From: Guillardia theta CCMP2712
Lineage: Eukaryota; Protista; Cryptophyta
Length of the DNA: 56,548 nucleotides
Reading direction: 5' to 3'
Assembly: GCF_000315625.1 (NCBI RefSeq)
Contig: NW_005434651.1
Coordinates: 1 to 56,548 of the forward strand
The translations under genes were made by a program, and so were the position numbers. A model generated the notes under the pieces. That model saw nothing but the letters and a program-made list of their open reading frames with translations. It was not told the DNA's origin and searched no databases. Shown here in pieces: positions 35-33,955 of this stretch (position 1 is its first letter; the number at the start of each line of letters is the position of its first letter).

Positions 35-3000
35 TTAGCCGATAATCAAAGCTGGTGATTTCAGATTTCTTCCGACCGTGTTCAGTTCTAATCCACTCCA
101 TCGACAGAATCGCTCTACCACTTGGACAAGCGTTTTCATCTCTCTCACTGAATGTGCTATCAAGACAAGGTCGTCTGCAAATGACAGATTATTAGGGTGT
201 TGAGTTGCAATCTCGTCTTGTTGTTGATCGAGCTGTTTGGACAAGATGCTCAGCAGAAGATTTGTTTTTGGCGGACTTGCGGGGCTGCCTTGGGGTAATC
301 CTCTGAGGAGTGGGATGGCTGCTGTTTCGAACCTCTCTGTCTGAATTTGCAGCGCTATCCCTTGGCTACAACTGATTGCGACGTCTACATCACACTGGTG
401 AAAGCCATATACCTCCATGATTTTTGCAATGGATTCGACTGCCACATTGTTAAAGAAGTTTGCAAAGTCGAGGTACAGCAGGATGAGGTCGTGTTGATTA
501 CTCTGAGCCTCCTCGATGATGTTGAGTAGACGATGACCCTGCCTGATCGTTCCTCCCTCTGGTCTGAAACCTTCCTGGTTGTTAGTGAGTAGCTTATGTT
601 TTTCAGCAGCTTTTGCCAGTCTGTGCGCTATGACTGCCTGGAAGATCCTCGTTATCGAGGAGAGGACGCATATAGGTCTTTGATTCTCCAAGACGTGACA
701 TATCTCATTTTTTGGGAGGAGCCTAACTCTCGCGAGCATCTTTAGTGTTTGCTTGTCTCCGATCAAGGCTCGGTTGATTGTCTTGCCTATTTCCTCCTTT
801 GCACTGTCAGGCAGAGCTTTCAGAATCTCGTTTGAAATCAAATCCATGCCTGCTGCTTTCCGGTTGGCCAGTTTTTGAATCCATACTTGGATCTCGCCTG
901 GCTCCAGCGGGTAAGCTATCTCTACATCCCTGGTCGGGTGTTGATTGATTTGCTCTGGGGGTTCGAAGTCCGGTGGTTTGACGGAAGTCAGTGATTGACA
1001 GCTTTTGCAGAAGAAGAGGATTGATGCTTCTTCGTTTTTCTGGCTTTTGTCATATAACGGGATCAGTCGTCCTTTTGTTTGACATTCAGCTCTTGCACAG
1101 GTTCCGTTCATGGTACATCCGTTGACTGCAAAGAAGGTTGCCGTGTGGGTTTCATCTTCTAGATCTCTTGCCAATCTCATGGGGAGGAATTGCTCGATGT
1201 TTTTGTATCCTTCCAGGCGCCACCCTCCTGGCTGTGTGATCAGTCCTCGGATGATGGGTACGATTGCGTGTGCAGGCGCCAGAGTTATGAACAGCTTTTG
1301 TGTCAGTGTTGCCAGGTTCCTCGCCCCGAGAACCTCGACGTGCAGCATGGTTTGATGTCTTGCATTCCAAAAGGTTTTGCTTGATTCTTTGGAGTTGCTC
1401 TGGAGGAATGTCTCGATTAACGGGTTCAGTTCTTGAAGATATGCTGTCTCCGGCTGTTGCATCGCTGGCTGGAGATCTCTCCATGACGTAAGTTCGATTG
1501 TGTTTGGGTGGCACTTCTCTGGCAGTTGACTCAGCATTGGGGCTTTGGGCTTAAAGTCTGACTTCTTGCCCATTGCATTTTGAGACTCTTTACTCCCTAT
1601 CGTGCCCAAGCGTCTTCTTCGTTCTTCGCATATTTTCAGGAATATCTCTTGGTCTTGTGCTGCGCAGATCTCCTTGAATTTGGTCATATTCTCTCTTATT
1701 TCTGCATGTAAGCTCGACTCCTTGTGTGCGCGATCAATAAAGTTTGGAATTTCTGAAGCGTTTCTTAAGTCCTTGTGAAGTTGCTTGATTTTGCGCTTGA
1801 GATCCATTTGAATTTTGGATGCATGTCTTTTCCCGCTGGAGCCTCGTAGCGGAATTTCCTTGATGGGGAGGGCTGTTGTTATCAATTCGAGAATGTCACA
1901 ATCTTGATGTAGAGCTTGTGCCGCTTTTATCTTCTCATCAAGTGCTATTGCCCATTCCACGCCTAGTCTTCCCGATAGCTTGTCCATCTCGACCACCCTT
2001 TTCTTTCGTCGAGGGGTTGCTTCTCGATCCCTCCTTTGCGGGAGGATTTCAATCTTTGGGATGGCTTGCTTACCCTCAGCATCGAGAGAGCTCACATTCA
2101 CTACAAGTGCTCTGTGGTCGACTGCGGCTCCTATGATGCAATCCTCTGCGGTCTGCGATATTAAGCTTACTGTGCGAGATGGATGGTGTAAGGCAAAGAC
2201 ATGATCCAGTTTTGCTTGGTGATGACCCTGCTTGTACCATGTGGAGAAGGTGAAGTGCGTGCTGCTTCTGCTCATCTTCTCGCAAGTGACCATCTGTGAT
2301 CGTCCAAGTTCGTTTAAGCCTTGTTCCATTCTCTCATCTGCACGGTGCACACTCGATTTGCTCCCGTATCCGACTCTCATGAGGATCTCTGGATGTTGTC
2401 GAGATGCATTGAAGTCGCCTCCTATGATGGTGAGCTTGACACTTGGCTCCGTCTTGAGCATCTGGCTCAGCGTTGCCCACATCTCGTCTTGATCCTCCCC
2501 TTGCGCTGCAGTAGGAAAGTGGGTGTTACAGATCCCTATCGGTTCTTTTTTTCCGATCTGTAAAAGTTGTATTCTTTTTTGGAGATTCTGCTCTTCCAAC
2601 ATGTCAGCGCGGCGGCAGAGCAGGGGGGAGGGACGAGGGAGGAGGTCCGCATGTACTAGCGTCACAAGGCGAAGATCACTCTTACCCTTTCTCCCCTCCC
2701 CTGCACCTTTCGTCATGAACACTCGGTAGCATCCCCATTCTTTCTTGATCATCATTCGGAGATCGGCCTCCTTTCGTTTTCCCCCGACCAAAACTTCTTG
2801 AAGTAGCACGACTGTTGGTTGATATGTTTCAATCAGGTATCCTAGGATGTGTTTCAGCACAAATTGACTGCATCCATTGACATTGTGAGAAATGATGTTG
2901 CCAGGGGCGTTGTCCTTCCTGTGCGTTTCCACCCATGCTGATTGCACTGACCTGTCGGTGGTAGTCGTGGATGGTTTGCTGCCTGCTGGCAGGATTTGCT

Positions 3001-4384
3001 CCTCCGCCCCCGTTGCCCATTGAAGGTGAGACGAGTTCCCATCTTGCATCTTTGTTGGGCCTGGTAGCTCCTCCTCTCCCCTTGTCTCCTTGTCGTTCTT
3101 CGAGATTGGCGCTGTGTGTATTGCTTGTGGCGGAGGAGGTGGCTGGAGTGGAGAGACGGGGCATGAAGCAGGAGGTGGGGGAGGGGAGGACGTCAGGATG
3201 TCTACCTGTGCTGACCTGTCTTGTAGTTGCAGGACCGTCGCGGCTATGAGCTTCGTTGATCCTTGTCCTCCTTGCTCCTGCTCGTCTTCCAATCTCTCCT
3301 GTAGCCGTGCATCTTCAGATGCCTGGGTCGCCTGTAGATCGCCTGCGCGTTCTTGGCCGTCTTCTCGCCTTTCCATCCGGTTAGGTATACGTTCCATGGT
3401 GAGCTCTGCAACTTGCCATTCCTTGTAACCTGAATCTTGCGCGTGCTGTAGAGCTCTGCAGATGCGTTGTATTGTTTCTCGCGTGTGCACATGTTCCATA
3501 CCCCCCCCCCAGAGGCCATCCAGCAGCAGATGTCTTGTTCGCATGAGCCATTGCTGATGGGGGGGGACGCCTTGTTGCCTCCCTGTGTTGAAGATATCTT
3601 GTTGTTGTGTTTTCCTTCGTGTCTTTGCGATCAGCAGCAGATGCAGCAAAACGAAAATTCCACAATTGTAGCCGTCTGTTTGTTGCAGCCCAGTTGACAC
3701 ACATGCCCTCCATGCCGTGTCGTCACAGTGTTCTTGTTGATCGCTAATTGCCTCGGTGATAATCGTCGCCATGAGTGATGCTAGGTCCATTCGCTGTGCG
3801 CCCCCCAATTGAAACTGTGCCTCCCTTTGGCTTCTGACTGTCCCCAGGTCTCTCTCAAGGGCCGTGCTAAGCGAGTCGACGATGTGTATTCTTTTTGTGT
3901 TAACATCTGCCACGATTAGAATCCAATGATTGCCGTTCTCTACGCAAGGGAATAAGAATGGTTGAGCTGCCCCGGCTAGCAGTCGTTTTGCTCTCCGTGT
4001 CCTTCCCTCCTGATCTCTCAAACCCGCTACTATTCTCGGGAGAACAATGGTCCCTCTCTGCAGCCCAAATTGGTTTCTAGTTTGCTCGCTGGCATACCTC
4101 GTGCCTTGGGGCCATGCTATTTGAAATCTGTCTTCCGCTGGTTCTAAATTGCGGTTTACCTCAACGATTAATGCCTCCATAACGTCCTCAGAGAGAAATC
4201 CATCTTCTCCTGAGTTGAGCAGCGCCGCTGCTCCGTACTCTCTATTGTTTTCCCGTAGACTCCAGGGGATCTCCCCTATCAAGTCGAATGTTTGTATTGT
4301 TCTGTTTTTTGGTTTTTTTCTTGTCATTGTTTTTCTCACCTTCTTGTCTCTTTCTGCTTGATTCCACCACGCCCTGGTGCCCAC
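35..4384 (-). CDS. LINE ORF2 polyprotein: Ulp1/C48 cysteine protease + AP endonuclease + Cys-rich insert + reverse transcriptase (frameshifted near nt 72)
   Basis: Protease motifs: FLFPCVENGNHWILIVAD..IVDSL and QQTDGYNCGIFVL (H, D, Q, C). APE motifs: SHNVNG, LLQEV, NTHFP, GGDFNA, KLDHVF, DHRAL. RT motifs: KAAGMD, RPICVL, QEGFRP, LYLDFANFFNNV, GLPQGSPASP, FADDLVL. Confidence 0.93.
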   Translation of the reverse strand: MGTRAWWNQAERDKKVRKTMTRKKPKNRTIQTFDLIGEIPWSLRENNREYGAAALLNSGEDGFLSEDVMEALIVEVNRNLEPAEDRFQIAWPQGTRYASEQTRNQFGLQRGTIVLPRIVAGLRDQEGRTRRAKRLLAGAAQPFLFPCVENGNHWILIVADVNTKRIHIVDSLSTALERDLGTVRSQREAQFQLGGAQRMDLASLMATIITEAISDQQEHCDDTAWRACVSTGLQQTDGYNCGIFVLLHLLLIAKTRRKTQQQDIFNTGRQQGVPPHQQWLMRTRHLLLDGLWGGGMEHVHTRETIQRICRALQHAQDSGYKEWQVAELTMERIPNRMERREDGQERAGDLQATQASEDARLQERLEDEQEQGGQGSTKLIAATVLQLQDRSAQVDILTSSPPPPPASCPVSPLQPPPPPQAIHTAPISKNDKETRGEEELPGPTKMQDGNSSHLQWATGAEEQILPAGSKPSTTTTDRSVQSAWVETHRKDNAPGNIISHNVNGCSQFVLKHILGYLIETYQPTVVLLQEVLVGGKRKEADLRMMIKKEWGCYRVFMTKGAGEGRKGKSDLRLVTLVHADLLPRPSPLLCRRADMLEEQNLQKRIQLLQIGKKEPIGICNTHFPTAAQGEDQDEMWATLSQMLKTEPSVKLTIIGGDFNASRQHPEILMRVGYGSKSSVHRADERMEQGLNELGRSQMVTCEKMSRSSTHFTFSTWYKQGHHQAKLDHVFALHHPSRTVSLISQTAEDCIIGAAVDHRALVVNVSSLDAEGKQAIPKIEILPQRRDREATPRRKKRVVEMDKLSGRLGVEWAIALDEKIKAAQALHQDCDILELITTALPIKEIPLRGSSGKRHASKIQMDLKRKIKQLHKDLRNASEIPNFIDRAHKESSLHAEIRENMTKFKEICAAQDQEIFLKICEERRRRLGTIGSKESQNAMGKKSDFKPKAPMLSQLPEKCHPNTIELTSWRDLQPAMQQPETAYLQELNPLIETFLQSNSKESSKTFWNARHQTMLHVEVLGARNLATLTQKLFITLAPAHAIVPIIRGLITQPGGWRLEGYKNIEQFLPMRLARDLEDETHTATFFAVNGCTMNGTCARAECQTKGRLIPLYDKSQKNEEASILFFCKSCQSLTSVKPPDFEPPEQINQHPTRDVEIAYPLEPGEIQVWIQKLANRKAAGMDLISNEILKALPDSAKEEIGKTINRALIGDKQTLKMLARVRLLPKNEICHVLENQRPICVLSSITRIFQAVIAHRLAKAAEKHKLLTNNQEGFRPEGGTIRQGHRLLNIIEEAQSNQHDLILLYLDFANFFNNVAVESIAKIMEVYGFHQCDVDVAISCSQGIALQIQTERFETAAIPLLRGLPQGSPASPPKTNLLLSILSKQLDQQQDEIATQHPNNLSFADDLVLIAHSVREMKTLVQVVERFCRWSGLELNTVGRNLKSPALIIG

Positions 4385-4551
4385 TGTCCCACCCGCCCTC
4401 TCCTCCTCCTCCTGCTTCCATTAGGCGTCAAGCGGCGCGGTTGAGGAGGAGTCAAGCGACATCTCTTCCACTTCTACCGCTCTGCTCCCTGCTTCGGGTG
4501 CATCTTCCACTCGCGCGTCTTCCATCTGTATCTCACTGCTCAAAACAAGTT

Positions 4552-6372
4552 TCATTCGTTACTGTTCCCAGGATTCCTACGAGGGAGAGCGCCGTTTCTA
4601 AGGAATTTATTCAAAGCAATGAAGAGAAGGTCAGTTTTCAAGGGCTTCTCCTCATTTGGTGCGAAAGCGCTGCTCTTTCGTTTCGCTACCTTCCACGTAT
4701 GCTTGCCTGCAATCATCCTGACTCGTTCGCGCAGTTGTTTGCTCACGGCATTCTCTGCCGCGTTGGCACCCTTACCAGCCCACTCTTGTAGCGTGGGGAA
4801 GGATGCATTTCCTGGGCTCTCCGGAGCCATCTCTTGCACCGCGTCATCAAGATGGAGTTGAAGCTGCCCTTGCTGTTGCAGCTCGCTCCTAGTTACGTCA
4901 GCAATAGTTTCCTTAAGTTCTTCGACGACCACGTCCGTTCCCGCATCTGGGAGGTTGGTCTCGTTGATAATTGAACTGAGCTCGATCTCTTTCCACACAG
5001 TTCCCTCTGCTCTGGTCCCCGTCGTTTGTGACCTGGCCTCAGGGTTAGACTGATCGCGAGTTGCCTGAGGCGACACTTTGAGGTTCAGACTGCTCGCTGT
5101 CGTTTGGATTTCAACTGTGCCTTGCCAGCAGAGGAGCTGTGTGGGGAATTCAGCCATCATCTTTCTTGCACTACTTTCACTGCGTAGCCGGAGAATGATA
5201 CCAGACCCATCCCAGATCCCTGTTTCTGGATCGCATTGAAGGTGGATCCGTTGGAGATCTCTCTCCACCTGTGGATCAAAGCAAGCGACAGCTCTCCGAA
5301 TGTTTCGGATGACTTTTGCTCTGCCCGTTTCGTCACTTGCACAGATTTTTTCGATCTCATTTCGGGAGAACTTCCCTGACGGCACAGGAGAGGAGATTTG
5401 TACCGAGTACAGCATCTCTGCTCCCGTTGCCATTGCCGTGCCCTCTTGTCGCACCGCATTCTTCATATTCTTGTGCAGCGCCGTTGCTTCCATCTGCACT
5501 GAGAACCATTTCAGTATTTTGTCATTCTCTGAGACCAGTCCCAAAGTGACTCCTGCACGATCCTTTCCATGTCGATCGAATGCTTGAAGAACGATGTCCG
5601 CTGCTTCAAGGCTCGAGCACGTTGCGATCCAGTCGACCTCTCTGTTCTGGTTGACTGTTTCTATTCCTACCGCAGCGAACACCTTCTTTGGCGGTAGGTT
5701 CCTCTTGGGGGGGAGGTTCACTGTCATTCCCGCGTTTGGGATCAGATCAATGATCGCTAATCCCTGCTTCAGGCATAGCTGCCTGTAGATCTCACATATG
5801 TCACCTGTGCTCGAATCGTTGAGCATCAGGAGTTGGGCCACCTCAGCTAGGATTCCAACTCTGCTCATGTTCTCCTTCTTTGGCCGCATCTTGAACGAGA
5901 TCGGTGGGTTGGCTGCTGGGTTCACTGCTAGAATCCTCCTGCCTGCCACCTTGAAGGTACCTTCTCCTTTCCAGAGTTTCTCAGCCGCCTCATTGCGGAC
6001 AAAGGTGATCACTGCTGGGATCTCCGCTGCCTGCACAAGGTCAGGCTTCAAGGGAGCCTTGAAGATCAGGCTCCTGCTGTCTTGCGTCTGATCGACGATC
6101 AAGCCTTGCTCTTCAAGCTTGAGGCATAAGTTTTCCACCTGTCTGGAAAAGTATGCAGGGATCCCAAGTACCTTCATGGTAATCGTCTGCACATTGGTGC
6201 CCTGATCATCATATGATCTGGCCTCCATCTGCCTTTGTCTGTCAGCTTGGAACTCTGACAGGTACCACTGCTTGACATCGTCACCCCACTGCCTGAGCCC
6301 TTTCGGATTCTCCAGTGACGAGGGTTCAGCGAAGCTGCATGTCTGACTGATGGCTTCGGCTAAGGCTTCCAA
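4552..6372 (-). CDS. LINE ORF1-like protein (5' end probably incomplete at the gap)
   Basis: 606-aa intronless ORF directly upstream of, and co-oriented with, ORF2; no motif confidently recognised. Confidence 0.7.
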   Translation of the reverse strand: MEALAEAISQTCSFAEPSSLENPKGLRQWGDDVKQWYLSEFQADRQRQMEARSYDDQGTNVQTITMKVLGIPAYFSRQVENLCLKLEEQGLIVDQTQDSRSLIFKAPLKPDLVQAAEIPAVITFVRNEAAEKLWKGEGTFKVAGRRILAVNPAANPPISFKMRPKKENMSRVGILAEVAQLLMLNDSSTGDICEIYRQLCLKQGLAIIDLIPNAGMTVNLPPKRNLPPKKVFAAVGIETVNQNREVDWIATCSSLEAADIVLQAFDRHGKDRAGVTLGLVSENDKILKWFSVQMEATALHKNMKNAVRQEGTAMATGAEMLYSVQISSPVPSGKFSRNEIEKICASDETGRAKVIRNIRRAVACFDPQVERDLQRIHLQCDPETGIWDGSGIILRLRSESSARKMMAEFPTQLLCWQGTVEIQTTASSLNLKVSPQATRDQSNPEARSQTTGTRAEGTVWKEIELSSIINETNLPDAGTDVVVEELKETIADVTRSELQQQGQLQLHLDDAVQEMAPESPGNASFPTLQEWAGKGANAAENAVSKQLRERVRMIAGKHTWKVAKRKSSAFAPNEEKPLKTDLLFIALNKFLRNGALPRRNPGNSNE

Positions 6373-6402: not shown

Positions 6403-6502
6403 NNNNNNNNNNNNNNNNNNNNNNNNNNNNNNNNNNNNNNNNNNNNNNNNNNNNNNNNNNNNNNNNNNNNNNNNNNNNNNNNNNNNNNNNNNNNNNNNNN
6501 NN
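6403..6502. other. Assembly gap (100 N)
   Basis: Run of N characters. Confidence 1.
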
Positions 6503-6539: not shown

Positions 6540-9500
6540 ATGCCGTACAACTGCGACAAATGCCAGGCAAGGAGCAGCAGCGATGAGATGCTGTTACCTT
6601 GAGTTACATGTTTGATGATGGAGATGTTTCCTTTGCTCCCCCGCATCTGATCCTTCCATCATTCAACTCCTTTCTTGGCGGCTCCTTCACTTCCTCATAA
6701 CACTTTTTTGACCTTCTGACTTGTGTTTCTCCAGATCGTGATCGAAGATGATACCAACGACAGCTTAAAATGCGTAATTTGAATAGCTTCCAGTAGGCGT
6801 CACCTGACTTTGAGTGTTTTACGTTCTGCCGTGAATTGCAATGTTGTTATTCGGAAGGCGGTAAGCATCAGTCTGTGCAGCATATGCTCAGGGGACGATA
6901 GACTGACATGTATTTTGCAAATTCCTGGTTTTCCCTTGGTTGCATGGATTAAATTCGTCTTCATAGACTGTAAGTGTCATATCATATGATGCGCTCAGGG
7001 GATGATTGGCTGACATGTATTTTGCAAATCCCTGGTTTTTCCTTGCTTGCATGGATTAAATTCGTCTTCATAGGGAGTAAGTGTCATATCATAATGATGT
7101 GCTCAGGGAACGATTCGCTGACATGATTTTGCAAATCTGAATCGCTTTTTTATTCGGATGGATGTAATGGGGCTGGATAGACGGTAAGTGACGCTTATGA
7201 AATATGCTCTCAAGGGATGATTGGCTGACATTTCATTTTGCAAATTCTTTTGCTCTTGCTCGGATGGGTGCAACTTGGGCCCAATAGCATGTAAGTCGCA
7301 TATGCTACAATGCGGTCAGGGGACGATTGGACTGACAATTTTTGCTTTTTATTCCGGGTTTTTCATCGGATGGGTTGTTGATTTTTCCGGTCAGCCGGTA
7401 AGCGATGATTATGAAATATGCGGTCAGAGGATGATTGGACTGACATTTTCGTTTGTGTATATGTCGGTATTTGCTCGAATGTACTGTGGATGGCGCGGTA
7501 TAGTCGGTAAGTGACGATGATGAAAGATGTGGTCAGGGAACGATTGGCTGACATGTGTTTTTCAATCTCATCGCTTTTTTTGCTGGGATGGATGGAATGG
7601 GGCTGGATAGGTTGTAAGTGACGAATATGAAATGATGCACTCAGGGATCGATTGGATTGATACTCTACAATAGGCTACTTTTCAAGCTGGAGCCGAAGGA
7701 AAGTGCAAGATCTGTTCGAAGCTTGAAAAAGATCATCATGGATCTTCCAAGTACTGCTACGTAAGGAACTGTTCGTTCAGGGGTTGATTGGACTGACATG
7801 TATTTTGCAAATTCCTGGTTTTTCCTTGCTTGCATGGATTAAATTCGTCTTCATAGGGAGTAAGTGTCATATCATATGATGCGGTCAGGAAACGATTGGG
7901 CTGACATAGTCTTGTGTTTTTTCAATTTCTACTGTTTCATGGCTTGTTTGGATTGAATCTTTCTTCAAAGGGAGTAAGTAGCATATGCAATGATGCGGTC
8001 AGGGAACGATAGGCTGACATGTATTTTGCAAATCCCTGGTTTTTCCTTGCTTACATGGATTAAATTCGTCTTTATAGCGCGTAAGTGTCATATCATATGA
8101 TGCGCTCAGAGAATGATTGGCTGACATGTATTTTGCCGTTCGGGTCTTTGCTGGCATGCTCTGGATTGCGGCTGTTTTTTTTCTAGTGCTGCGTTTGCTA
8201 CTACGACGATGAATCTGAAGATCGAAGGCAAGAACGCATGTGCCAGCACTGCAAGGATCGACGTTCCTGCGTGCACAACCTTGAGCAAGATCTTGTATCG
8301 TCAAGACCCAGTAGGCAGGACGCCATCGCCAAGATCGAGAAGGTCCGCGAGCACGTCAACAACGTGGGGAAGCCATTTGCCCAGAGACTGGACCTAGTCA
8401 AGTGCCACTATATCTTCGGGATGCAAGAGATAGATACCTCTGCTGTCGAAGACGTGAAGCAGCTCCTGTCGGGCGGGGAGCTTGGGAGCTGCTACAACAG
8501 CGAGGAAGGCACGCTCAACATGTCTTTGCGGACAGATAGGATGAAACGATATGTGATACGAGACCTGAGGATGAAGAGCCTGCCTCGCTGGATCTCCGAG
8601 CTCGGCGTCGCTTTTAAAGTCATCGACGTGTCCGGTAACCCCAGCCTCTCCCGCCTTCCCTTGGACGAGCTCTGCAGCATGGAGTCTAGCCTGCAGGAGG
8701 TCAAGTGTAAGAGCTGCGTCAGCCTGCAGCTGCCTCCCCCTGAGATCGCCAGTCAGGGAGGGGCAGCTGCTTTCACGTACCTGCAGAGTGTCAAGAGAGA
8801 CAGCGAGGCGAACAAGCGGATCAACCTCATCCTCATAGGCAACGGAGAGGCAGGCAAGACGAGCGTGCTGAGAGCTCTGAGGTCAGACAAGGACAAGGCG
8901 GACAAGATCGAGGTAGACAGGAGGACGATCGGGATAGACCTGCACGAGTGGAAGCCTGATTACGCTGACGGGCTGACGTTTGACGTGATAGACTTCGGGG
9001 GGCAGCAGATCTACGCCAAGACCAACCAGTACTTCATCGTGAGGCGGGCCTTGTACCTGCTGGTTTGGAGCGTGAGGGTGAAGCGAGACAAAGAGAGCAA
9101 AGAGGATGGAGGGGGAGGCATGGAGGAGCTGAAGAAGATGATCTCGACATGGCTGCGAGCTACGCAAGCGCGAGTGCCGGGAGCGAGTGTGTTGCTCGTA
9201 GTAACGCACATCGATCTTGCCGGGGAGAGCGAGGTGACGGATCAGTGTGAGAAGGTGAAGGCATGTGTGGAAGAGGAGCTGAAGAAGATGGCAGAGGAGG
9301 AAGACGAGAACATCCTGCCGTTGCACGTTATCAATGGAGGCGAGAGCTTCCGGGTGAACTGTCTTGAGGGACAGGGAGTGAAGGAGCTGCGGCAATCTGT
9401 GTGCAAGACTGCAAAAGAGCTGCTGTGGTGGCAGGAAAAAATCCCTGGACCTTATCTGAGACTGAGAGAGGCTGTGGAGAAGCGTAAGTCAGAACCTGTC

Positions 9501-12113
9501 TCGTACGTCAAGGTAGAGGAGTACAAGGAGATGTTGAGAGAGTCAGGGGTCAACGAAAAGGAGCAAAAGGTGGCAACGAGCTTCTTGCACGACATGGGCG
9601 TGCTCAAGTACTTCGGTCATGAGCTGAGTGCGGATGAAAGCAAGAGAGACCAAGGCAAGTACTCCGTCGAGGACACGGTCTTTATCGATCCCGTGTGGAT
9701 GATCGACGTGTTCAAGGGCGTGATGCGACATGACTGGGAGCACCTACTCGACTGCTTCCAGCAGGACCCAACCAAGTCCAAGAAGACGAAGAAGCTGCTA
9801 CACCTGGGTATCATAGACGAGGACATGTTGGAGTACCTGTGGCCCCAGCAAGACAGCGACTTCTGGCGCAATGCGAAGACAGACAAGACATCAAGATCGG
9901 AAGAGGTAGGCTTCATCAAGCGCCATGTGGAGGTGCAGGAGGCGGTGGCTCTGCTTCGGGGCTGCGATCTGGCGCACTTCCTGGGCGTGGGGATGAAGGA
10001 CTTGAAGGATACAGACAACAAGAGCAGAGAGCTGCTGTGTCCCGGCATCATCCCGTCGTTCACGCATGAGCACAAGCGGGCAGTGACGGACAAGGACAAG
10101 CAGTCTCTATGCGCATCTGTGGAGTGCGAGTACAACATCTTCCCCGCAGGCTTCATCGACAGGCTGGTCGTGCTGTGCGCTGCTCGACACTTTGAGGTAG
10201 ACTGCAGCGGCTCTATGGCGGTGATGAAGGGCTGGGGCCGGACGCTGCTGGTGAGCTGGCGGGAAGACAATGACAAGCACGTGCTGAGAGCTGACGCGTC
10301 GACGAGGCAGCAGATCGAGAACTTGCAAGAGGACTTGAGGCGACTCGAGGCGTTCTTCCCGGGGATGAAGCGAAGGAGAAGCAACGAGGAGAGCTCAGGC
10401 AAGGAGGCCGTGCAGGTTGGGATCTTCACGCAAGGAGAGAGGTCAAGAGCATGTGGGCTGGATATTGAAAGAAAGGTGAAGGAGCTTTACGAGGCGGAGA
10501 ACCTCCCTCTAGGTCTTACTTGTCAGATTCATCCATGTGACGAACGTGGAGATGCTGGTGATGAATGTCTCGTGAACATCTTGTGTATATCGACAGAGTG
10601 TGTTGATGAGCAGGGAGCCATGCAAGGAGAAAGTAGCTTCAGCAAGCCATGGAACAGATTGACAGCTAGCAAAGCAATTATCATCCCCGTCGTATTGACA
10701 GACTACTACGACAAGCACATCAAGCCGAGGAACAGGTTCAACGAGTGGTGGCCGCAGGAGATACAAGGGATGGAGCGATACAGGATCTTCCATCAGTACA
10801 AGAAGAAAGATGAAGTATCGAAAGACAAAGTATCCGAATATGAAAAATCTATGCGAACGTTGTACGACGGCATCATCAAGAAGCTTCATCAGGGACGGGG
10901 AAGCTTCGAAGACTTGTACGATGTCACCAGTCAGAACGAGCTTCTGTGCCAAGCTTGCTTGCATGATAGGTCTGAGTCTCAACCTGCCTCACAAGGCGTT
11001 AGAGCCGTGGGCAGGTTCGATCCGTCGGAGATCAAGGAAGCACTGGACAAAGAAACCAATGGTATGACAGACATGCAGCAAGAGCTGGAGCAAGAAGATG
11101 TCATCAAACAAACGATCATGATCAAAGCAATCACTTGCACAAGGGGTCATACGACAACCGTGAAGGAGGTGCTGGCTTTCAATGACTCGAGCTCCCCGTG
11201 TCCGTCGTGCTTGAAGGACAAGAGAGTCCCGCACTTCTTCAGCCGACCCACGTGCTTGAGCATGCTCGCTCGCGATCTAACGGCTAAGATTTACTGCAAT
11301 CAATGTCAGAGGGAGATGGACGTGCTGGACGTCACGCCGCCTCAGGTGTTCTTGAGCTACAATTGGGGGCACGACAACTCGACGCAGAAGATGGTGAGGG
11401 AGGTGAAGCGGCGGATCGAAGAGCAGACGAGCCTGCAGTGCTGGTTCGACGTGGAGGGAGGGATCGACCACGGGGAAGATCACATGCAGAAGATGGAGCA
11501 GGGAGTGTCTCGCTGCGAGGTGTTTGTGGTCTTCATGAGCGACAAGTACGTTAAGAGCGGCAACTGCAGGAGGGAGTTTGCTCGGGCGTGTAAGGCAGGG
11601 AAGTACATCATCCCTGTCTTGGTGCCGGTGCTGTATGAAGCAAGTCCAGACTCAAAGGACTTGGAGTCAGAGTCAGGCTGGAAGGGCGACAAGGAGGGTG
11701 AAGACTGGTGGAAGAGAATTGCGGAGCTAGAGGAGACAAGTGAAGCTGCCAAAGAGGTCAAGGTCGACTGGGAGTTTCTCGCGTCATTCTCGAAGCCCTT
11801 GAAGATTGAAGCGAAGAGGGAGCAGCAAGAACAACAGCAGAAAGAGAAGGACCATGGTGGTTTGCATGTGTCAGGGCTGGAGGCGCTGGTGGCAGCAGTG
11901 CAAGCGAGGGTTTACCGGGGAGGCGTCGTATTTCACGAGGTTGCTTGTTTCCTTGTGGTTGACATGGCCTTGACATGCGTGGGCCAGGTGGAGCACCCGT
12001 TTCTCAGGTCGTTACATCGTCAAAAGCGCCTGCTCGACAGCATTCTTGATCGTATCAGCCGGCTGCAGTCAAAGATACTGTTAGGGATTGACAACCCTGA
12101 TGATCTACCTTGA
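6540..12113 (+). CDS. ROCO-family GTPase with TIR domain: microexon-encoded Cys/His-rich N-terminus, LRR remnant, ROC, COR, Zn-finger-like region, TIR_2
   Basis: Main exon starts at 8187, in frame with ORF 8238-12113. It encodes an LRR-like stretch ending in the ROCO-typical LPPPEIASQGG, P-loop GNGEAGKTS, RTIGID, DFGGQ, THID, a COR region (FLHDMGVLKYF, VFIDPVWMIDVF), CxxC pairs, and TIR VFLSYNW..CWFD..FMSDKYVKSGNCRREF. Probable in-frame 48-nt intron at 11940-11987. Predicted upstream exons: 6540-6566 (tentative, GC donor), 6735-6773, eight 3-nt exons, 7674-7760, and three more 3-nt exons. Confidence 0.88.
6858..8186 (+). other. Array of eleven 3-nt microexons and one 87-nt exon separated by homologous introns
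   Basis: AG|NNN|GTAAG at GCG 6858-60, ACT 6967-69, GGA 7074-76, ACG 7181-83, CAT 7288-90, CCG 7395-97, TCG 7504-06, GTT 7611-13, GGA 7857-59, GGA 7971-73 and CGC 8078-80. The exon at 7674-7760 reads ATFQAGAEGKCKICSKLEKDHHGSSKYCY. All junctions are phase 0. Confidence 0.88.
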
Positions 12114-15880: not shown

Positions 15881-18800
15881 CTATGATTGTGCTTGCACAG
15901 CATCAATCATGAGTGCGATGGTCTCTGTGTTTACATGAGCAAGAAAGAAAAGGGTCATTCAAATGGCACCTGAGTCGGGGGTGACTTCTTCCTGCTTCAT
16001 CTCGTTGATCACCTTGCATAGGCTCAACATGCGCTACAAAAAGAAGAAAACAACCTTGAGAACTTCACTAAGTTTTCGCTGTCCCGACAAGATGGAAATG
16101 ATGAGGTTATACGTAACAATATTCGCTCGTACTCCCGATGTCTGTTCGACTTGTAAAACACTCGAGATTGTAGGTCGACGTGATGAGGAATGAACGAAAA
16201 GTAGAAAAGCAATGGGTAATGAAAAGGGAGATTAGAACCTTCATCCCCTTGTAGACATCAAAAGCTTTCTGATAGTTTGACGATTTGACACAAGCCGAAA
16301 TGAGAGAGTTGTAAGCTTGCACGCTTGGGGTGTGCCCAGCCATCCTGATCAAGATCTTTTCAGTTTTGATCCTTGCAAGAGTTTAGCAATGGGATAGAAT
16401 GGAGAGCGAGCAAGAATAACGACGAAGGTCCAAAAACCGAAAAGGAAAGGGAATCATCAGCAAAAAAAAACGACCTCATGTCTACCATAACATCGATCGC
16501 TCTTCTCCAATCGCCTCCTTCCTCTGCTGCCATCGAAAGTGCGTTGAAAGTGGACAGCGACGGTCTTATTCTTTGCAGCTGCATCTGGCTGTAGACCTAA
16601 CGTATGTGTCATTCAAAACATGGCAAGTGGGAGATTGACAAGAGAACTCAGATAGAAGCTCAACAATCATCACCTCGAACGCTTTCTGCCACTCGTGGCT
16701 CCTGACACATGTCTTGATCAATGTGTTGAAAGTTTGTAAGTTTGCTCTGAAGCCATACTCCTGTGTCAAAGTCAGCTCTTGCTCTCACAATGCCACAGTC
16801 GTCATCATCATTCATCTTCCGCCCCGTGCCCCTTCTGTCCTCAACTTCAAGCAATTGACCTGGAGGAGCCCGACGACTTGAAAGGCGCAGGTTGAGTTCC
16901 CGACGACCTCGCATGTGCCGAGGAGGACGTTGAAGGTGACAAGGTTGGGGGTCACATGGTCTTCCTTCATCAATTCGAGCACCCTAAAGGCGCGATCGAG
17001 ATCTCTTGCAACCTGTAGAGACACTTAGATGCGAAGAGGCTAACGAACGAGCAAGCAGACACAATCAACGAGGGAGTAAAGGCACAGCAAGCTCATAAGA
17101 CACTCGCACTATTTGACAAGCGAAAGGCAGGAAAAAAGGTCCGGGGTGTGAATCAAACGAGCCTCTTATAGTCTGCCAAGGGCTGCTGTAGACCGAAAGC
17201 ACAGGGGAGAGAGGGCAAGAGGAACTAGAGTAGGAGAATAGCGATGTAGCACCTTGCAGGCGTGGATGAGGGCGGTGAACATGATCACGTTCGGCTTGAT
17301 TCCATCTCGCTTGCACTCGTCGAGGATGCGGAACGCGTCATCGAGGCGACCGGCTTGACCGCAAACATGTACGACTGCTGAGTACATGCGAATGTTCAGC
17401 TGGATCCCTGCGTCTTGCATCCACTCCAACACATCCATAGCCTGCTCCCACTGCGACAAGTCACAGTCGATCAGGAAAGGTGGAGAGATGGAGAGATAGA
17501 GAGGAATAGGAGAGGAGGAGGAGGGGAGAAGGAGTGCGGAAGGAGAAGTGCAAGAATGAAAGGCAGGAAGGCAAAAATAGAAGCAAGAGAAGAGGAGAGG
17601 AGAGGAGGAGAAAGTCAAGGAAAAGCACCTGCTTGCTATGCTGGCACACAGAAAGGAGAGCGGAGAAGGTCATGGGGTCAGGAGGGATCTCTTTGCGGAT
17701 CATCTCGAGGAAGAGATCAAAAGCAGTCACCCAGTTGTCCTTGCTTCTGCAGCTTGCAATCATCGTGCTGTATGTTACCACGTTAGGACTGATGCCCTGG
17801 GCCTGCATGTCGTCAAAGAAAGCGAAAGCTTGAGAGAAGTTGTTGGCTCGCAGGCATGCAAAGATCAGCGAGTTGTAAGTGATCACGTTGGGCATGACTT
17901 GTCTTTCCATCATCTTCTCGTACATCTCAATTGCAAGGCTGTACTTTCTTGTCTTGGCGAAAGTACTGATGAGCGTCGAGTAGGTAATCACATCTGTGAT
18001 CACGTGTTGGTCTTCTATCTCGAACAAGATGTCGTAACTTTCCTTCCACTTGCCCATCTCCATGTACACACCCAGCAGAGAATTGTAGGTCACAATGTCC
18101 GGCCTCAGCCCGGCCGCCTTTGCCTCTGCAAAGAGAATCTGGGCAATAGTCAAGGTGTTCTGCCGCTTGCGAGACATCAGAGAGGTTGCGAGTGAGTTCT
18201 TGCAAACAGCGATGAGAGCGTTGAAGGTGTAGATGTTGGGCGAGACGTTCTTGGCGTCCATCTCCTCCTTCAGTGCAAAAGCTTCATCGTACTTGCCACA
18301 GCGATCGCAGAGGGAGATTAAGGTGGAGAAGGTAAAAACATCTCGCTCAATCTGATCTTCGCTCATCATCTCTAAGATCGCAACTCCACTCTCCCAGTCG
18401 CACTGCCGCTGACAGGCAGCGAGGGCTGTGTTGAAGGAGACAATGTCGGGTGAGACCTTCTCTCTCATTCGCTTTAGCATCACGAAGACATTCTGAATAT
18501 CTGGGCTGTGGCGGAGAGCAGATAACACGGTGTTGTATGAGACAATGTCCGGCTCCACTCCATCCTTCTCCATGATGTTGAGGATCGCAACTGCTTCTCT
18601 CCAATCCCCCATCCTCTCTAGGGCTCGGATGCAAGCATTGAAAGGGAGGGAGGAGAGTTTTATCTTTCTCCTTTCGCTTTCTTCTCTCATCCATCGAAGA
18701 ACATCTGCAACCATCATCTTCTTGTGCTTCCTCCCGATCTCAACGATAAGCCTCGACACCAACTTCTCATCCCACATCATGCTCGACAAGACCTTCTTCA

Positions 18801-19419
18801 CCTTGTCCGATGACTGCTCGCTGCTCAAGAGCTTATCGACGTAACTCTTGATGTTATGGTGCTGCCTTGGAGTTTGCGTGCTCATCCTCAAACCATTTTG
18901 CTTCATTTCAACATCAGTCCATGTGTTGCTTTGCTGCCTCCCAGCGGTGTGACTCTTCCAACTGTATCTTCGTCTTGTAAGTCGAGAAGGAGATGTCATC
19001 CGTTTCTCCGACACTCTTTCAGACGTTAGGAAAGAAGAGCTTTCATCCACAGATTCACTCACAAATCGATCCACCTTCTTCGACCTCGTATGGTTTGTTT
19101 TCCCTCGAGAAAAACTTCGAGATTGTTCACTTTGAGGAGACTGATAGTTTGTCTTAAATTCTGAGATGTTTGCCGGGTTGAAATGTCTTGGAGACCTTGA
19201 AAGAGCAAGGGAAAGGAAAAACTGCTGTGCAAGATTGCTCTTTTGAGGAACACGACATCTTGAGACTGGAAGCTTGTCCTGCGTCGGAAAAAGTGGACAA
19301 AAGATCCTTGACGTAGAGGGAAAACCTTTGTGATGAATTTGAATAAAACTATGAACAACTGTGCGGGATTGAAAAATAATAGAACAAAAAATAAAACTAA
19401 GAAGGCTGAACGATTTCAT
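15881..19419 (-). CDS. P-type pentatricopeptide repeat protein with a bipartite (signal + transit-like) leader; multi-exon at the 3' end
   Basis: More than 15 tandem 35-aa PPR motifs (PDIVSYNTVLSAL, PNVITYNSLIFAC, PNVVTYSTMIASC, PNLVTFNVLL); hydrophobic N-terminus ending ..VHS-F. Confidence 0.92.
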
Positions 19420-20265
19420 TGCTGGTTTGACTCAGATCCTTGAGACTGATCTTGAGTTTCTATCTCCCGCCTGGCGCAAACCGTTGAGTCACCCGTGAAT
19501 TCGATAGCTCATCGGTCAATGACCATGTGGAACTATCGCAATACCCTCTTCTTGCTGTTAGGAGAATTTTATCGTCTTCCAATGAACCAAATCATTCTAG
19601 CACCATCCCTCATCTGATAGAGAAATCAATTTCCTTCTGTGAAAGCCAAACACATCAGAATCATTTACACAAGCATCATTTACACGCTTAAATAATTTTA
19701 AGGCATCAATTGGGTTCAACAAGACAACTCGCCGTTCTCAGATCTGACCTAATCTTTGCCAACTATTCTACACTACGATATAGACGGATTGCATTGTCGG
19801 ATCGTCTCTAAACGTCTTCATCTCAACGAAATTTTTGCTCTCTGGTATTCGCAAACAACTCACAAATCAACTCACAAATCTATTGGCCAGATAAGAGTTT
19901 AGTGCTTAGGTCTCTGAGACCAACATAGTACAACATAGCTCATCTGAATTTTCCTCCTCTGTCTAGCCTTATTACAACCCTCTTGCTCTTCACTCAATTT
20001 CAGCTTCTACCGTAGCTTTTCGTTTTCAGGATGTTCACCTACATCCTCACCCAATCCACTTCCTTGTCCCTTCCCCTTCCCTTTCCCCTTCCCTTTCGCT
20101 CTCGTCCCATCAGTTGTCCGCATGCTCCCGTCCTCATGTGGCCGCCAAATTTAAAATTTAGTTTTATGAATTTACTCATCAATATTAAAACTACTTTTTA
20201 AAAATTCTCAAGAGACAGAATGAGCAGCAAGCGAAGAAGTAAATTGAGTCAGACAAAACAAGCAG

Positions 20266-21273
20266 ATAGATGAAGAAGACCAGCAGGTAGACGAAGAAGA
20301 CAGGCACGTAGACGAAGAAGACAGGCACGTAGACGAAGAAGACCAGCAGGTAGACGAAGAAGACAAGCAGGTAGACGAAGAAGACCAGCAGGTAGACGAA
20401 GAAGACCAGCAGGTAGACGAAGAAGACCAGCAGGTAGACGAAGAAGACCAGCAGGTAGACGAAGAAGACCAGCAGGTAGACGAAGAAGACAAGCAGGTAG
20501 ACGAAGAAGACAGGCACGTAGACGAAGAAGACCAGCAGGTAGACGAAGAAGACAAGCAGGTAGACGAAGAAGACCAGCAGGTAGACGAAGAAGACCAGCA
20601 GGTAGACGAAGAAGACAGGCACGTAGACGAAGAAGACCAGCAGGTAGACGAAGAAGACCAGCACGTAGACGAAGAAGACCAGCAGGTAGACGAAGAAGAC
20701 AGGCACGTAGACGAAGAAGACCAGCAGGTAGACGAAGAAGACCAGCAGGTAGACGAAGAAGACAGGCACGTAGACGAAGAAGACCAGCAGGTAGACGAAG
20801 AAGACAGGCACGTAGACGAAGAAGACCAGCAGGTAGACGAAGAAGACCAGCAGGTAGACGAAGAAGACCAGCAGGTAGACGAAGAAGACAAGCAGGTAGA
20901 CGAAGAAGACAAGCAGGTAGACGAAGAAGACCAGCAGGTAGACGAAGAAGACCAGCAGGTAGACGAAGAAGACCAGCAGGTAGACGAAGAAGACAGGCAC
21001 GTAGACGAAGAAGACCAGCAGGTAGACGAAGAAGACAAGCAGGTAGACGAAGAAGACCAGCAGGTAGACGAAGAAGACCAGCAGGTAGACGAAGAAGACC
21101 AGCAGGTAGACGAAGAAGACAGGCACGTAGACGAAGAAGACCAGCAGGTAGACGAAGAAGACAGGCACGTAGACGAAGAAGACAGGCACGTAGACGAAGA
21201 AGACCAGCAGGTAGACGAAGAAGACAGGCACGTAGACGAAGAAGACAGGCACGTAGACGAAGAAGACAAGCAG
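20266..21273. repeat. 21-bp minisatellite, 48 units (GTAGACGAAGAAGAC + CAGCAG / AGGCAC / AAGCAG)
   Basis: 1008 bp of exact 21-nt period with three interspersed variants and one hybrid CAGCAC unit. Confidence 0.97.
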
Positions 21274-21293
21274 GTTGAAATGAAGATAGCATC

Positions 21294-24200
21294 TGGTGAT
21301 CAAAGTGCTGACATGAGCAGGCAAGGGGAGCATCTAACAGTTGATGATGCAGGAAGAGGATGATTGTTCACTCTCTTGGAGCAGCTGCCCGATTCCAATC
21401 CCTGGCAGGAGAGCTGGGAGGATTTGGCTATGATACTTGTGTAATGAGCAAGCTTCTTCTTTATCCCTGCTTTAACCTTGTTTCCAGAGAGCCTGGGGAG
21501 AGCCAGGTGTAAGATGGATGGGCTGCGACGAATTTTTTCCTGATCCAATAGTGTACAAGGATCTTCGCAACAAGGTGAGCGACTAGCGACATTGCAGCTC
21601 AGTCTCAACGATCGCAGGTACCCAAGGGATGCGCGCCCACTCAAGTTCAATTTGTCGGGGAGACTTCCATCGGTAGGCGAGCCGACAGTTGGCCATAGAG
21701 TGACATGCTTGCAGGCTCCTACCCCTTCGGTCAGCCCACTGAGGGAGACCCCAACCATCCGCCTTTCTGGACTCCAATGACAGATTGATGACAATTGTGC
21801 GATGAGCCTGGTGTACTTGTAGCACTGTAGGGATGTTGGGAATTGTGTGACTCGAAAGTTGTCTGGACTTGTTCGTTTTACTCGCTCATCATCCCCTGTC
21901 GCGATATTTCTGTCGTTCCATTCAATCTTCCGAGAAGCAAGGGGAATCACTTACTGACTCCTTGGAAGCCTCGACGAACTTGCAGTCGCTGAGAAGCTTA
22001 TGGAAACTATGTCATGCGCATGCAGAGCAGAAACGATGAAGATACTTGAGGGAGAACGTCCTGATCGGACAAAGACTTGATCATGCTCTGAAGCCTCGCC
22101 CTTTGATCGTCAAAACTCTTCTTGCATTCTTCGAAGAATGCTGCCTTGGCATGTCGCTGAATTTCAGATCTGAAAGATACGAAATTTGATAGAGAGAAAG
22201 CGATCGCATATGAGAGAATGATCATATTAGAGTTGAGATGAGCGTGTTCTTTGTCATGGCAAAGCCTTGTACCTGCGCATAAGTCCAGGTATAAGCATCC
22301 CCCTGAATCTTTGAAAAGAGAAACGTGAGTTCGAAACGAGAGGATATTCAGTTATGAGGGTAACAACCTGTAATCTCTGATTGCTGAGAAAGGAGCGACT
22401 ACAGGTAGAGCATACACGATTTCTTGTTTCGTGGCTGGATTCTTCAAGGCAAAGTGAAATGAGGGATGAGGAGGTAAACTCCTACCGTGATGAAGTGTCG
22501 GAAGTCAGTCGCTTGAAAAGCTTCGGCCTCTTCCACCTGACGAGACGATCATTTCCAGCAAAACTTCAGCTTCATTCACCTGAGACGTTGAGTTCTCGAT
22601 CACGTCAGTGTTACGCTTGTCAGCATCAATCTCAGTGAAACTGGTCTGACTCATCGTTTCAGTCACAATCTCTACATCTTCCTGTTCTTTTCTCATCAAG
22701 TTTTCATCGTAGGTCAGATCATTCGCTCTAGGGGAGTAGAAGAAAATGCCGAATCCCATGCAAAGAGTGCTGATGGAAACAAAATTCTTCTTTCCTCGAA
22801 TGACAAAACCTCCTTTCGAGAGATATTCTCCTGACTGCACAGGCGCGGATCTTATATCCTTGAGTTCAGAGTAGAAGCAATAAAACCTGAGGAGCTTTTG
22901 ACACTTGATCAGGATAAACCCAGTAGGCAGCTGTACCGCCTGTAATGCTATCGTTTACAACCTGACAAACCACAAATGCAGGGCTAACTTGCAGTCTTCG
23001 ATTTCCATGCAGAACTCCTGCAGACTGCAAACTCTGCAGCTTGCAGGATTGTGTTCTCTGGCAACACTTTCCTCTCCTTCAATTCGTTTCTGGCGATCAC
23101 CGAAGATGCTCCATGTATATCTGCATGGAAATAGAAATCTTGACTCCGCAGATATCTAGGAATTATTCTTGTTTAAATTTGGGACTGTAGATGTTTTCTC
23201 TCACCGCTTCACCAAGAGCTCGTTCTGTTGGGCATCTTTTCCTGCAATCACCTAAACAATTAGTTCAATGTTTCAAAACAAAGTCCTGTAGAGTATCACC
23301 AATATTTGATCGCTCGATATGAACCAGAAAAATTTCTCAAACCAAAACTTCCTCCGAACTGAAGAAATTCCAATTGAAGACGACTTGCTCTGAAAATCAT
23401 TCTTTGAAGCTTTTGTGTTCTTCCTCTGCGAAGCCCTGGAAACACCTACATGTAACTACATCAAAACATGTTCTGGGTTTAAATACTTGATTTGTGTATT
23501 CTTCAGGGAGATATCTGCCATCTCTTCCGCTCTTTGCTGCTTTGCTGCAACTTTCTTTTTTTTTTGGAAGAAATTCCTAGCGTTTGCCAGCGATGAGATG
23601 GAGTAGTCAAGGACAAGAGTGATATCTGTTGCTCCTCTCGACTTTACAGCTTCACTCTCCACTATCCCCTCTTGAGGGAGGCGAAAAGAAGCCTGCGTGT
23701 TAGCGAGGTCAACACTTTGAAGCCACTTGGTCCACGGGCAATCCTGTGAAAAAAGGAATAAATGTGGCGACAACACTTTTGCTTTCTGTGTCAAAGGCAA
23801 TGTCTTTACCGTAGAATTCATTTCATGTATCTCATGAAGGACATTTGCAGCGTTTCGATGAATCTTGACTAGTCCTCGTATTTTATCCAACGCTTCGTCG
23901 ATATGAAATGAATTGAGTTCAAGCAATGTGGCTTTCTTATGGTTGAGAAGCTCCTCTTGCTTCAAGCCTTTGAAAATGGTGATCACTGAGAGCATTTCAA
24001 CATCTCAATTTACCTTCAGTGTGAGATTTTATGTCTTTCTTGGCCTTGTTTACTTTCTTCGAAACAGTTTCCACAGCTTCATTTGCATCCTTTTGATCTC
24101 TGCCATACTCATATTTCAAATGACGTGAACAAAACCCATTCCTCGATTCACCTGTTGAAATCAATCGTAGAAAAGAATTCATCCATCGCAACATCAATGC

Positions 24201-33385: not shown

Positions 33386-33955
33386 ACGTCGTTTTATAAG
33401 GCCTTTTATAGCCGCGGGGAAGGAGTTTGAAATCTTGCCGTTGAGAGTTTTTGAAAGCTCCAAGAAGAACAACGACGCAGAAACTCTGTAACCGCTTCGT
33501 AACATTTCGCTCGCATTCGCAAGATTGTTGAGCTTAGAGCGACAAGTACTTCGCTGTTTTAAGGTTAAAAGCAAGAAAGAAAGCACTTACACAAAGATCA
33601 ATGTCAACGCCAAGCGTCGTCAAAGTAGCGCACCATCTTGCGCAAAGTAGGCGCTCGTAACTGAGAAGATGGGAGCCAAGAATCTTGAGTAGGATCATCA
33701 GCGCTCTCCCATCGAACCAGATATTCCGTACAATTGCCTTTTACACCTCGTAGAAGTTACCATCTGCCGTAACGATGTGTGCAGGAGGCTGAGACGCAAC
33801 TTTGAAACAGGAAAAAACAAACGTACTGTACTGTCAGACGGCTTTTCCAGGAACCGCAAAGGTCCAATAAATTTCATACGAAACTTTCGAGCATATTCCG
33901 GTAGACTCAAATCCTTCGTAGAAAGCACTGCAAATACCAGGTTAAGTTGAAAAAT

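Follow-up and report, generated by a model that had tools for sequence, protein, structure and literature searches.

Schistosome micro-exon genes (MEGs) evolve fast at the host-parasite interface, and skipping of their exons yields protein variants without a frameshift. MEG exons are symmetrical, 3–81 bp in size, and thus as short as 3 bp (bioRxiv 10.1101/2023.06.21.545858). In the ROCO genes of brown algae, 72-nt exons encoding one leucine-rich repeat (LRR) each are duplicated and reshuffled, and introns and the opposite strand carry copies that are shuffled or inactivated (PMC3341825; PMC11378527). Here we describe a serial array of predicted single-codon exons at the 5' end of a Roc-COR-TIR gene of Guillardia theta CCMP2712, located in a 56,548-nt stretch of contig NW_005434651.1 (hereafter the window). 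The array is probably the 5' coding part of a ROCO-type, immune-receptor-like gene, with linkers built one codon per exon and diversified by germline duplication and by diversifying selection on a variable linker.

The 5' part of the gene (6540–8186, plus strand) contained a 27-nt exon 1, eleven 3-nt exons and one 87-nt exon, all in phase 0 (Table 1). The predicted N-terminus reads MPYNCDKCQ, A-T-G-T-H-P-S-V from eight triplets, a 29-residue Cys/His exon, G-G-R, and then the main-exon opening CCVCYYDD. Thirteen introns split the first 198 nt of the inferred coding sequence, and the 3.9-kb main exon had none. YAG-NNN-GTAAGY occurred 10 times in the window against 0.92 expected, with 9 of the 10 within 6964–8086; two units with an AAG acceptor bring the array to eleven 3-nt units. 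Cassette introns in the window were 104–106 nt long (seven exactly 104), plus single introns of 60, 96, and 111 nt, and Tandem Repeats Finder returned a 107-nt period in the array. A candidate microexon ATC at 6735 was dropped, as it had a weak donor (GTGATC) and was not kept in the paralogues. A scaffold gap of 100 N (6403–6502) lies 38 nt 5' of the inferred exon 1, and a promoter or further 5' exon is not readable there.

The main open reading frame (ORF; 8238–12113) shared 88%, 80%, and 69% identity with three G. theta CCMP2712 proteins and 58–60% with three Hanusia phi proteins. A brown-alga (Ectocarpus) ROCO gene was considered and rejected, as G. theta proteins were the best matches. A DNA identity of 92–94% to G. 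theta paralogues and the common architecture mark the window as nuclear DNA of this cryptophyte or a very close relative. Pfam domains within the main exon were Roc (PF08477, 6.6e-12), COR-A (PF16095, 1e-10), and TIR_2, and the order Roc then COR is that of ROCO proteins. The Cys-rich exons, including the 87-nt exon and the start of the main exon, matched no Pfam family. We propose that the single-codon linkers connect three small Cys-rich elements, of which exon 1 supplies C-x2-C, the 87-nt exon C-x2-C...H...C, and the beginning of the main exon CCxC...CxxC...CxH.

The MEG family is the nearest analogue of this locus and LRR-exon shuffling in brown-alga ROCO genes its nearest functional parallel. 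As in MEGs, runs of very short symmetrical exons (multiples of 3) are flanked by ordinary exons. However, the Guillardia microexons are always one codon, up to 13 in succession, and their introns are tandem repeats of about 104 nt with a distal-branch design, whereas MEG introns reach 5 kb. Microexons make up most of a small secreted protein in MEGs; in this unicellular alga the array covers the N-terminal 10–100 of 1,300 residues of an intracellular Roc-COR-TIR protein and the triplets supply only 9–21 codons. The brown-alga genes likewise encode ROC-COR candidate immune receptors whose recent paralogues differ mainly in a region of repeated exons of the same phase and length. Their units are 72-nt whole-LRR exons, in contrast to 3-nt exons for single linker residues, and in Guillardia the LRR-like repeats are in the main exon, the C-terminal domain is TIR, and no opposite-strand copies were found. 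The combination of serial one-codon exons, distal-branch tandem-repeat introns, and this protein context is in neither MEGs nor brown-alga ROCO genes, and we found no description of serial 3-nt exon arrays, in Guillardia or elsewhere, in the literature searched.

We compared the window with three G. theta paralogues, a fourth partial paralogue, and one metagenome contig (L001 to L005), all of which carried arrays directly 5' of the main exon. The window array has 11 triplets and an 87-nt larger exon, and that of L001 has 21 triplets and larger exons of 87 nt and 81 nt. The remaining arrays had no larger exons, with 13 triplets in L002, 11 in L003, 9 in L005, and at least 5 in L004, a cut contig. 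The first triplet was GCG at the same position in 4/5 loci (window, L001, L002, and L005), and counterparts of intron 1 measured 262–304 nt in all loci. The GC-AG first-intron donor GCAAGG was present in five of six arrays (window 6567; L001 6276 and 15518; L003 8523; L005 6837), with GTGAGG in L002. The motif ATGCGTAA occurred once per array, in intron 1, in all six (window 6770–6777; L001 6480 and 15713; L002 8534; L003 8739; L005 7012), and could form a 10-nt poison exon that shifts the frame, provide an alternative start, or act as a decoy donor. An AG sits 10 nt upstream of it in 5/6 arrays. Telomere-type CCCTAAA repeats lie at 54, 6447, and 17318 on L005, one block about 360 nt upstream of its exon 1; this paralogue is at the scaffold start and its gene model is partial. 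Scans of metagenome contigs, one by core motif and one by protein, gave no match.

The sixth array belongs to a second, unannotated gene on L001 (15491–17700) that carries the same N-terminal module on a different, non-ROCO body. Its exon 1 encodes MPRNCQDCK followed by GCAAGG. The gene has no fewer than 13 three-base exons, along with one exon of 6 nt (TGCTGT) and a Cys/His exon of 84 nt present in two identical copies (16074–16157 and 16549–16632). The body of this gene resembles a coiled coil, and kinase and PARP gene calls follow downstream.

Several features indicate that the arrays are coding, as the N-terminus of the whole gene family, a point absent from an earlier reading of the window that was based on sequence only (the sequence-only reading). 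ATG-x3-C-x2-C-(K/Q/E) followed by G(C/T)(A/G)AGG was found exactly once, at the head of each of the six arrays, and within exon 1 the Cys codons are kept and the x-x codons vary. In 5/5 complete loci, the frame set by the exon-1 ATG meets no stop in any triplet or larger exon and continues into the main exon. None of the 70 ROCO-array triplets is a stop codon, and the larger exons (81, 84, and 87 nt) are all multiples of 3 in phase 0. The main-exon opening CC(V/I/L)C(Y/F) is kept in frame in six loci, about 17 codons ahead of the Met of the public models. The 87-nt exon of L001 (7233–7319) differs from that of the window by synonymous and conservative changes with the Cys, Cys, His, and Cys codons kept, and related exons of 81 nt and 84 nt occur in the L001 gene and the second gene, respectively. 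Because the frame is open and the Cys/His codons are conserved, we took the window array as coding.

Indirect support came from Cryptomonas curvata. The transcriptome protein P0008 begins MSSYLAALEDT-CCQCRTRYDQKKK and reads CC-Q-C-RTRYDQKKK. In its genomic homologue on metagenome scaffold L006 (86% identity), the same stretch is split into exons of 6 nt (TGCTGT), 3 nt (CAG), 3 nt (TGT), and 66 nt, with canonical splice sites: AG before each exon and a GT donor after it (GTAAGT, GTGTGC, GTAAGT, and GTTCAC). This points indirectly to 3-nt exons entering the mRNA at the N-terminus of cryptophyte ROCO genes and to a translated CCxC motif.

Several observations count against coding arrays. The Cryptomonas support combines a transcript and a genome of different organisms. 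No transcript-derived G. theta protein covers this N-terminus in the searched protein collection, where residues 1–180 of the main exon, used as query, matched just a single partial gene model and a single metagenome contig, and no cluster had transcript-derived members. The public models of the paralogues start at an internal Met (MCQHC), one of them inside an intron: the P0001 model (L001 9093–9110) starts MYFAI, a translation of the motif ATGTATTTTGC in the last cassette intron. The EukProt-listed Hanusia phi proteins also start near MC.HC. These observations could be explained by a non-coding array, a long repeat-filled first intron or 5' untranslated region in which position 8187 receives exon 1 or a spliced leader directly and 8238 is the start of translation. 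The AG-NNN-GT sites would then act in recursive splicing, serve as decoys, or be left over from duplication. In G. theta, at least one gene in five is subject to spliced-leader trans-splicing (PMC5619915), and phase-0 junctions would keep direct joining in frame too. The 17-nt cryptomonad leader CTCGGCGGCTGGTCAAG followed by GT, as in a spliced-leader RNA gene, did not occur on either strand of the window or of the other loci. However, splice signals, AG-exclusion zone, and branch spacing were kept in every unit of diverged paralogues, exon lengths were all divisible by 3 without stops, and the Cys and His codons were kept in exon 1 and the 81–87-nt exons. Upstream of the Met there was an in-frame 3-nt length difference beside the conserved CCxC, and CCQC lies inside the transcript-derived Cryptomonas protein and is microexon-encoded in the genomic homologue. 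We therefore consider a non-coding array improbable; the gene family is mis-annotated at its 5' end.

Table 1 Features of the array and main exon in the window.
Feature	Position	Strand	Remarks
Exon 1 (predicted), 27 nt	6540..6566	+	M-P-Y-N-C-D-K-C-Q; ends in phase 0; 5' splice site GCAAGG follows
Intron 1, 291 nt, GC-AG	6567..6857	+	conserved ATGCGTAA at 6770; 90% identity with L001 intron 1
3-nt exon GCG (Ala), first microexon	6858..6860	+	context AAG GCG GTAAGC; AAG acceptor
3-nt exon ACT	6967..6969	+	type A cassette 1, about 6909–7011
3-nt exon GGA	7074..7076	+	type A cassette 2, about 7016–7118
3-nt exon ACG	7181..7183	+	type B cassette 1, about 7123–7225
3-nt exon CAT	7288..7290	+	
3-nt exon CCG	7395..7397	+	
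3-nt exon TCG	7504..7506	+	nearest relatives are the L001 CGG cassettes
3-nt exon GTT	7611..7613	+	type B cassette 2, about 7553–7655
87-nt exon, 29 residues	7674..7760	+	C-x2-C...H...C pattern
3-nt exon GGA	7857..7859	+	type A cassette 3, about 7799–7901
3-nt exon GGA	7971..7973	+	AAG acceptor
3-nt exon CGC	8078..8080	+	type A cassette 4, about 8020–8122
Twelve cassette introns	6861..8186	+	GTAAGT, G-run core, CTGAC, AG-free U/G-rich tail, YAG
Branch-like motif starts	6903, 7010, 7118, 7225, 7332, 7440, 7548, 7657, 7793, 7901, 8014, 8121	+	one per cassette intron
Main exon, 3.9 kb	8187..12113	+	opens CCVCYYDD..., 17 codons ahead of first in-frame ATG at 8238; then Roc, COR-A, TIR_2; intronless

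The introns share a consistent design. Across 55 cassette introns, a CTGAC branch-type motif lay a median of 45 nt from the donor, with the branch A 60 nt (interquartile range 59–63) from the acceptor. The tail between branch and acceptor (mean length 56 nt) was free of AG in 50/55 introns vs 4.4 expected, and composition-matched shuffles never exceeded 12; AG-free heads were found in only 1/55. Donor, branch motif, and acceptor were the most conserved cassette-intron positions, the remainder varied, and splice signals were kept in paralogues even though the cassettes were only 55–65% identical. A C at the third triplet base occurred in 1/70, as expected at donor position -1. Collectively, these patterns support array units that behave as real, selected splice units. 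In two ordinary introns of a G. theta proteasome gene, CTGAC or TTGAC is 11–13 nt from the acceptor, and the 60-nt window intron ahead of the 87-nt exon has the same short spacing. Given an ordinary spacing of 11–13 nt vs 60 nt, a cassette intron resembles a normal minimal intron with an AG-free spacer of about 47 nt added. Rfam returned no family at E<=1 for the window introns, and the cassette introns had no consensus RNA structure and a mean folding z-score of -0.02. A hairpin formed by the GTCAG...CTGAC core was considered and not adopted, there being no Rfam or structure signal.

A 3-nt exon would be too small for exon definition, leaving all splicing information to the introns. Each intron combines a GTAAGT donor close to consensus with a G-run, CTGAC some 60 nt ahead of the acceptor, and a tail free of AG, so that the first AG after the branch would serve as the acceptor; the distal spacing may prevent a clash between the branch-site complex and U1 bound to the following donor, just 3 nt away. 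Distant branch points with AG-exclusion zones are described for regulated human exons. The Guillardia introns are alike in having the branch about 60 nt upstream and no AG up to the acceptor, but in this one gene family some 60 tandem introns follow the pattern as a rule, in conjunction with 3-nt exons and likely for spacing and not regulation. Recursive splicing at ratchet points, known from Drosophila Ubx and others, also places an acceptor beside a donor and implies stepwise intron-by-intron removal. Ratchet points leave no exon, whereas AG and GT in these arrays are always 3 bases apart, zero-length exons are absent, and a related cryptophyte transcript retains such bases as codons.

The sequence-only reading had proposed that the homology unit is centered on the microexon, and this held across the compared loci. 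Cassette pairs with an upstream-flank identity of at least 0.85 had a mean downstream-flank identity of 0.81 vs a background of 0.59, and the same comparison for the two halves of one intron gave 0.66 vs 0.58. Because similarity is linked across the triplet, more than within the intron, the inherited unit is the triplet-centered cassette. We recovered both of its cassette types. Type A was present in four near-identical copies (6967, 7074, 7857, and 8078), found both before and after the 87-nt exon, with flank identities of 91–98% upstream and 83–94% downstream and the triplets ACT, GGA, GGA, and CGC. Type B was present at 7181 (ACG) and 7611 (GTT), with flanks about 80% identical.

Cassette arrays differed strongly between loci with otherwise similar genes. 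Between the window and L001 or L005, unique anchors were 89–94% identical, with intron 1 and the first cassette (window-L001 only) and the last intron and main exon used as anchors, and fourfold-degenerate sites in the main exon were 91–95% identical. The array interior had no collinear alignment, and we therefore conclude that arrays turn over much faster than the surrounding gene. The positional homologue of CGC 8078 in L001 (9045) was GGA, inside a 92%-identical alignment. In L001, the triplet series GAT-(GCA or TGG)-CTG recurred with related flanks at 6844–7173 and 8725–8950, which implies duplication of a multi-cassette block. We propose that arrays gain and lose 107-nt cassettes in the germline through tandem duplication and unequal crossing-over, a cassette being the 3' half of one intron with the codon and the 5' half of the next intron, and that breakpoints fall in the shared core; this would account for the different number and order of codons in recent paralogues. 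Breakpoints within introns, in the core common to all types, fit the linkage pattern, and the suggestion that cassettes are copied or shuffled by crossover in that core is borne out to this extent. Cassette order and number, whose invariance would have spoken against shuffling, ranged over 9–21 triplets in different order. The arrays resemble minisatellite-like repeats with unequal crossing-over in their 107-nt period, fast change of copy number and order, and higher-order repeats. Unlike minisatellites, each Guillardia repeat is a functional splice unit, in which donor, branch, and acceptor are conserved and selection keeps the tail free of AG.

Near-identical intron sequence on both sides of unrelated triplets and the uniform 104-nt intron length would also be expected if a mobile, introner-like intron had inserted repeatedly between codons of an ancestral exon, the triplets never having been part of the repeat. 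Introners repeat as whole introns dispersed in unrelated genes; here the linkage runs across the triplet and not within the intron, and of the four window introns that start with a type-A 5' half, a single one ends with a type-A 3' half. Codon number varies with cassette number, recent duplicates have identical triplets, and the introns lack excess folding stability. Copies were confined to arrays and to one strand, with no cassette or core motif on the minus strand of the loci examined. An origin by intron insertion is thus extremely unlikely.

We compared rates of change in triplets and flanks using nine type-A cassettes from the window, L005, and L004. The flanks required 40 parsimony steps over 92 columns (0.43 per column) and the triplet columns 4, 3, and 3 steps (3.3 per column), about 8x the flank rate (Poisson P about 1e-6). 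No run of three flank columns was as high as the triplet total on the type-A tree, and the triplet states were GGA, AAT, GAT, ACT, and CGC. When all 70 ROCO-array triplets were compared, cassette pairs whose two flanks each reached 80% identity or more (means 0.91 and 0.87) had a per-site triplet identity of 0.33 vs a background of 0.28–0.31. Type-A flanks of the window diverged by 6–10% from those of L005 and L001, close to the 5–9% at fourfold sites, with triplets at background identity. The claim that the triplet is hypervariable relative to its flanks therefore stands for type A and fails as a general rule: GCG was stable in 4/5 loci despite flanks diverged to 60–70%, the CTG and GAT classes of L001 were stable, and nearest pairs share their triplet.

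The case for selection is weakened in three respects. The rate test draws mainly on one cassette family, with nine related, non-independent copies. Nearest-neighbor cassettes mostly share their triplet (GGA/GGA, CTG/CTG, CGG/CGG, AAT/AAT, and GCG/GCG). The type-A flanks of L004 were only 4–9% diverged from those of the window vs 24% at fourfold sites, and the ratio of triplet to flank change is inflated because these flanks are partly constrained or homogenized. A possible, if less probable, explanation is that hypervariability is only apparent, with flanks held by splicing constraint or homogenized by gene conversion and concerted evolution as the triplet drifts or keeps older differences. 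Consistent with this, L004 flanks were nearer the type-A flanks of the window (91–96% upstream) than fourfold sites (76%), intron halves were mosaic, GCG was kept at position 1, and splicing information is necessarily all intronic. However, the 3' halves differ greatly among cassette types, so most flank positions are not individually essential, and conversion tracts linking both flanks across the triplet should take the triplet along. The window comparisons with L005 and L001, in which flanks diverged about as much as fourfold sites and triplets were nonetheless at background identity, also argue against it.

Change beyond the triplets was seen as well. Between the window and L001, the 51 nt of main exon before the Met were 78% identical vs 95% for the adjoining intron; the window-L005 pair had no such difference. 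This suggests an excess that extends beyond triplets, in line with selection acting on the protein, and dN/dS, the ratio of nonsynonymous to synonymous divergence, was near 1 for the N-terminal domain in a rough count. The divergence of exon 1 vs intron 1 was set aside as a test of selection, since window-L001 homology starts only at the donor and exon 1 may have a different history. We infer that codons change faster than their flanks most likely through diversifying selection, or at least relaxed constraint, on a variable linker of a fast-evolving receptor, with a dedicated mutator less likely than either.

The sequence-only reading had left the choice between diversifying selection and targeted change and envisaged diversification at the DNA level on top of splicing. 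Selection was the better reading of these two, and nothing pointed to a targeted or somatic process. A dedicated mechanism that rewrites the triplet by targeted mutation, templated replacement, or somatic rearrangement would be compatible with triplets differing at two or three bases between near-identical flanks and with the reverse-transcriptase ORF directly upstream in the window. Systems of the diversity-generating retroelement type pair a dedicated reverse transcriptase with a template repeat, but the sole reverse transcriptase here is part of a LINE-like (long interspersed nuclear element-like) retroelement with an APE endonuclease and a Ulp1 protease. None was present at the other loci, where arrays adjoin acetyltransferase, proteasome, and WD40 genes instead. 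All four bases take part in the triplet differences, the triplet is unchanged within many cassette classes, the pre-Met main exon is also more diverged than its adjoining intron between the window and L001, and assembled germline loci already differ in triplets, making a somatic process unnecessary. We consider such a mechanism very unlikely. The comparisons instead point to fast protein-level evolution of the whole N-terminal module, clearest at the single-codon exons, and not to a mutator aimed at triplets.

The LINE-like element occupies 35–6372 (minus strand) with ORFs of 1449 and 606 residues, the first carrying the Ulp1-protease, APE-type endonuclease, and reverse-transcriptase domains. 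It stops immediately short of the assembly gap beside the array and is not found upstream of the paralogous arrays. Elsewhere in the window, a pentatricopeptide-repeat protein gene, whose exact product had no entry in the protein collection, lies at 17464–19419 (minus strand), and a 21-nt unit is repeated 48 times with a 92% match at 20261–21275, inside overlapping minus-strand ORFs (20191–21333). Near-perfect tandem repeats were found at 33956–34333 (26 nt x 14.5), 36112–36304 (36 nt x 5.4), and 40781–40932 (38 nt x 4), the first two inside an 859-residue ORF (33947–36526) with no Pfam match.

Because every exon is in phase 0, any subset could be skipped without a frameshift and combinatorial isoforms would be possible. 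A further-reaching proposal is that each single-codon exon is independently included or skipped, so that every Roc-COR-TIR gene, and related genes, would yield many variants of an N-terminal linker or sensor. Cassettes that are rapidly gained, lost, and reshuffled in the germline, or even somatically, would form a second layer. Together these would amount to immune-receptor diversification in a unicellular alga, served by a dedicated intron design whose distal branch site and AG-free spacer let the spliceosome process serial 3-nt exons. We regard this as doubtful.

Serial 3-nt exons probe how small an exon can be and still be recognized, and the arrays offer about 70 natural examples of one simple design that can be moved into minigenes. 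For annotation, a whole N-terminal module, in at least two gene families, has been missed by public models. One-codon exons with intron flanks as an internal reference also permit a straightforward test of selection vs mutation bias. For the gene family itself, the arrays would mean that a protist family of immune-type NTPases concentrates its variation in a cassette array, in parallel with LRR-exon shuffling in brown algae and the MEGs of schistosomes.

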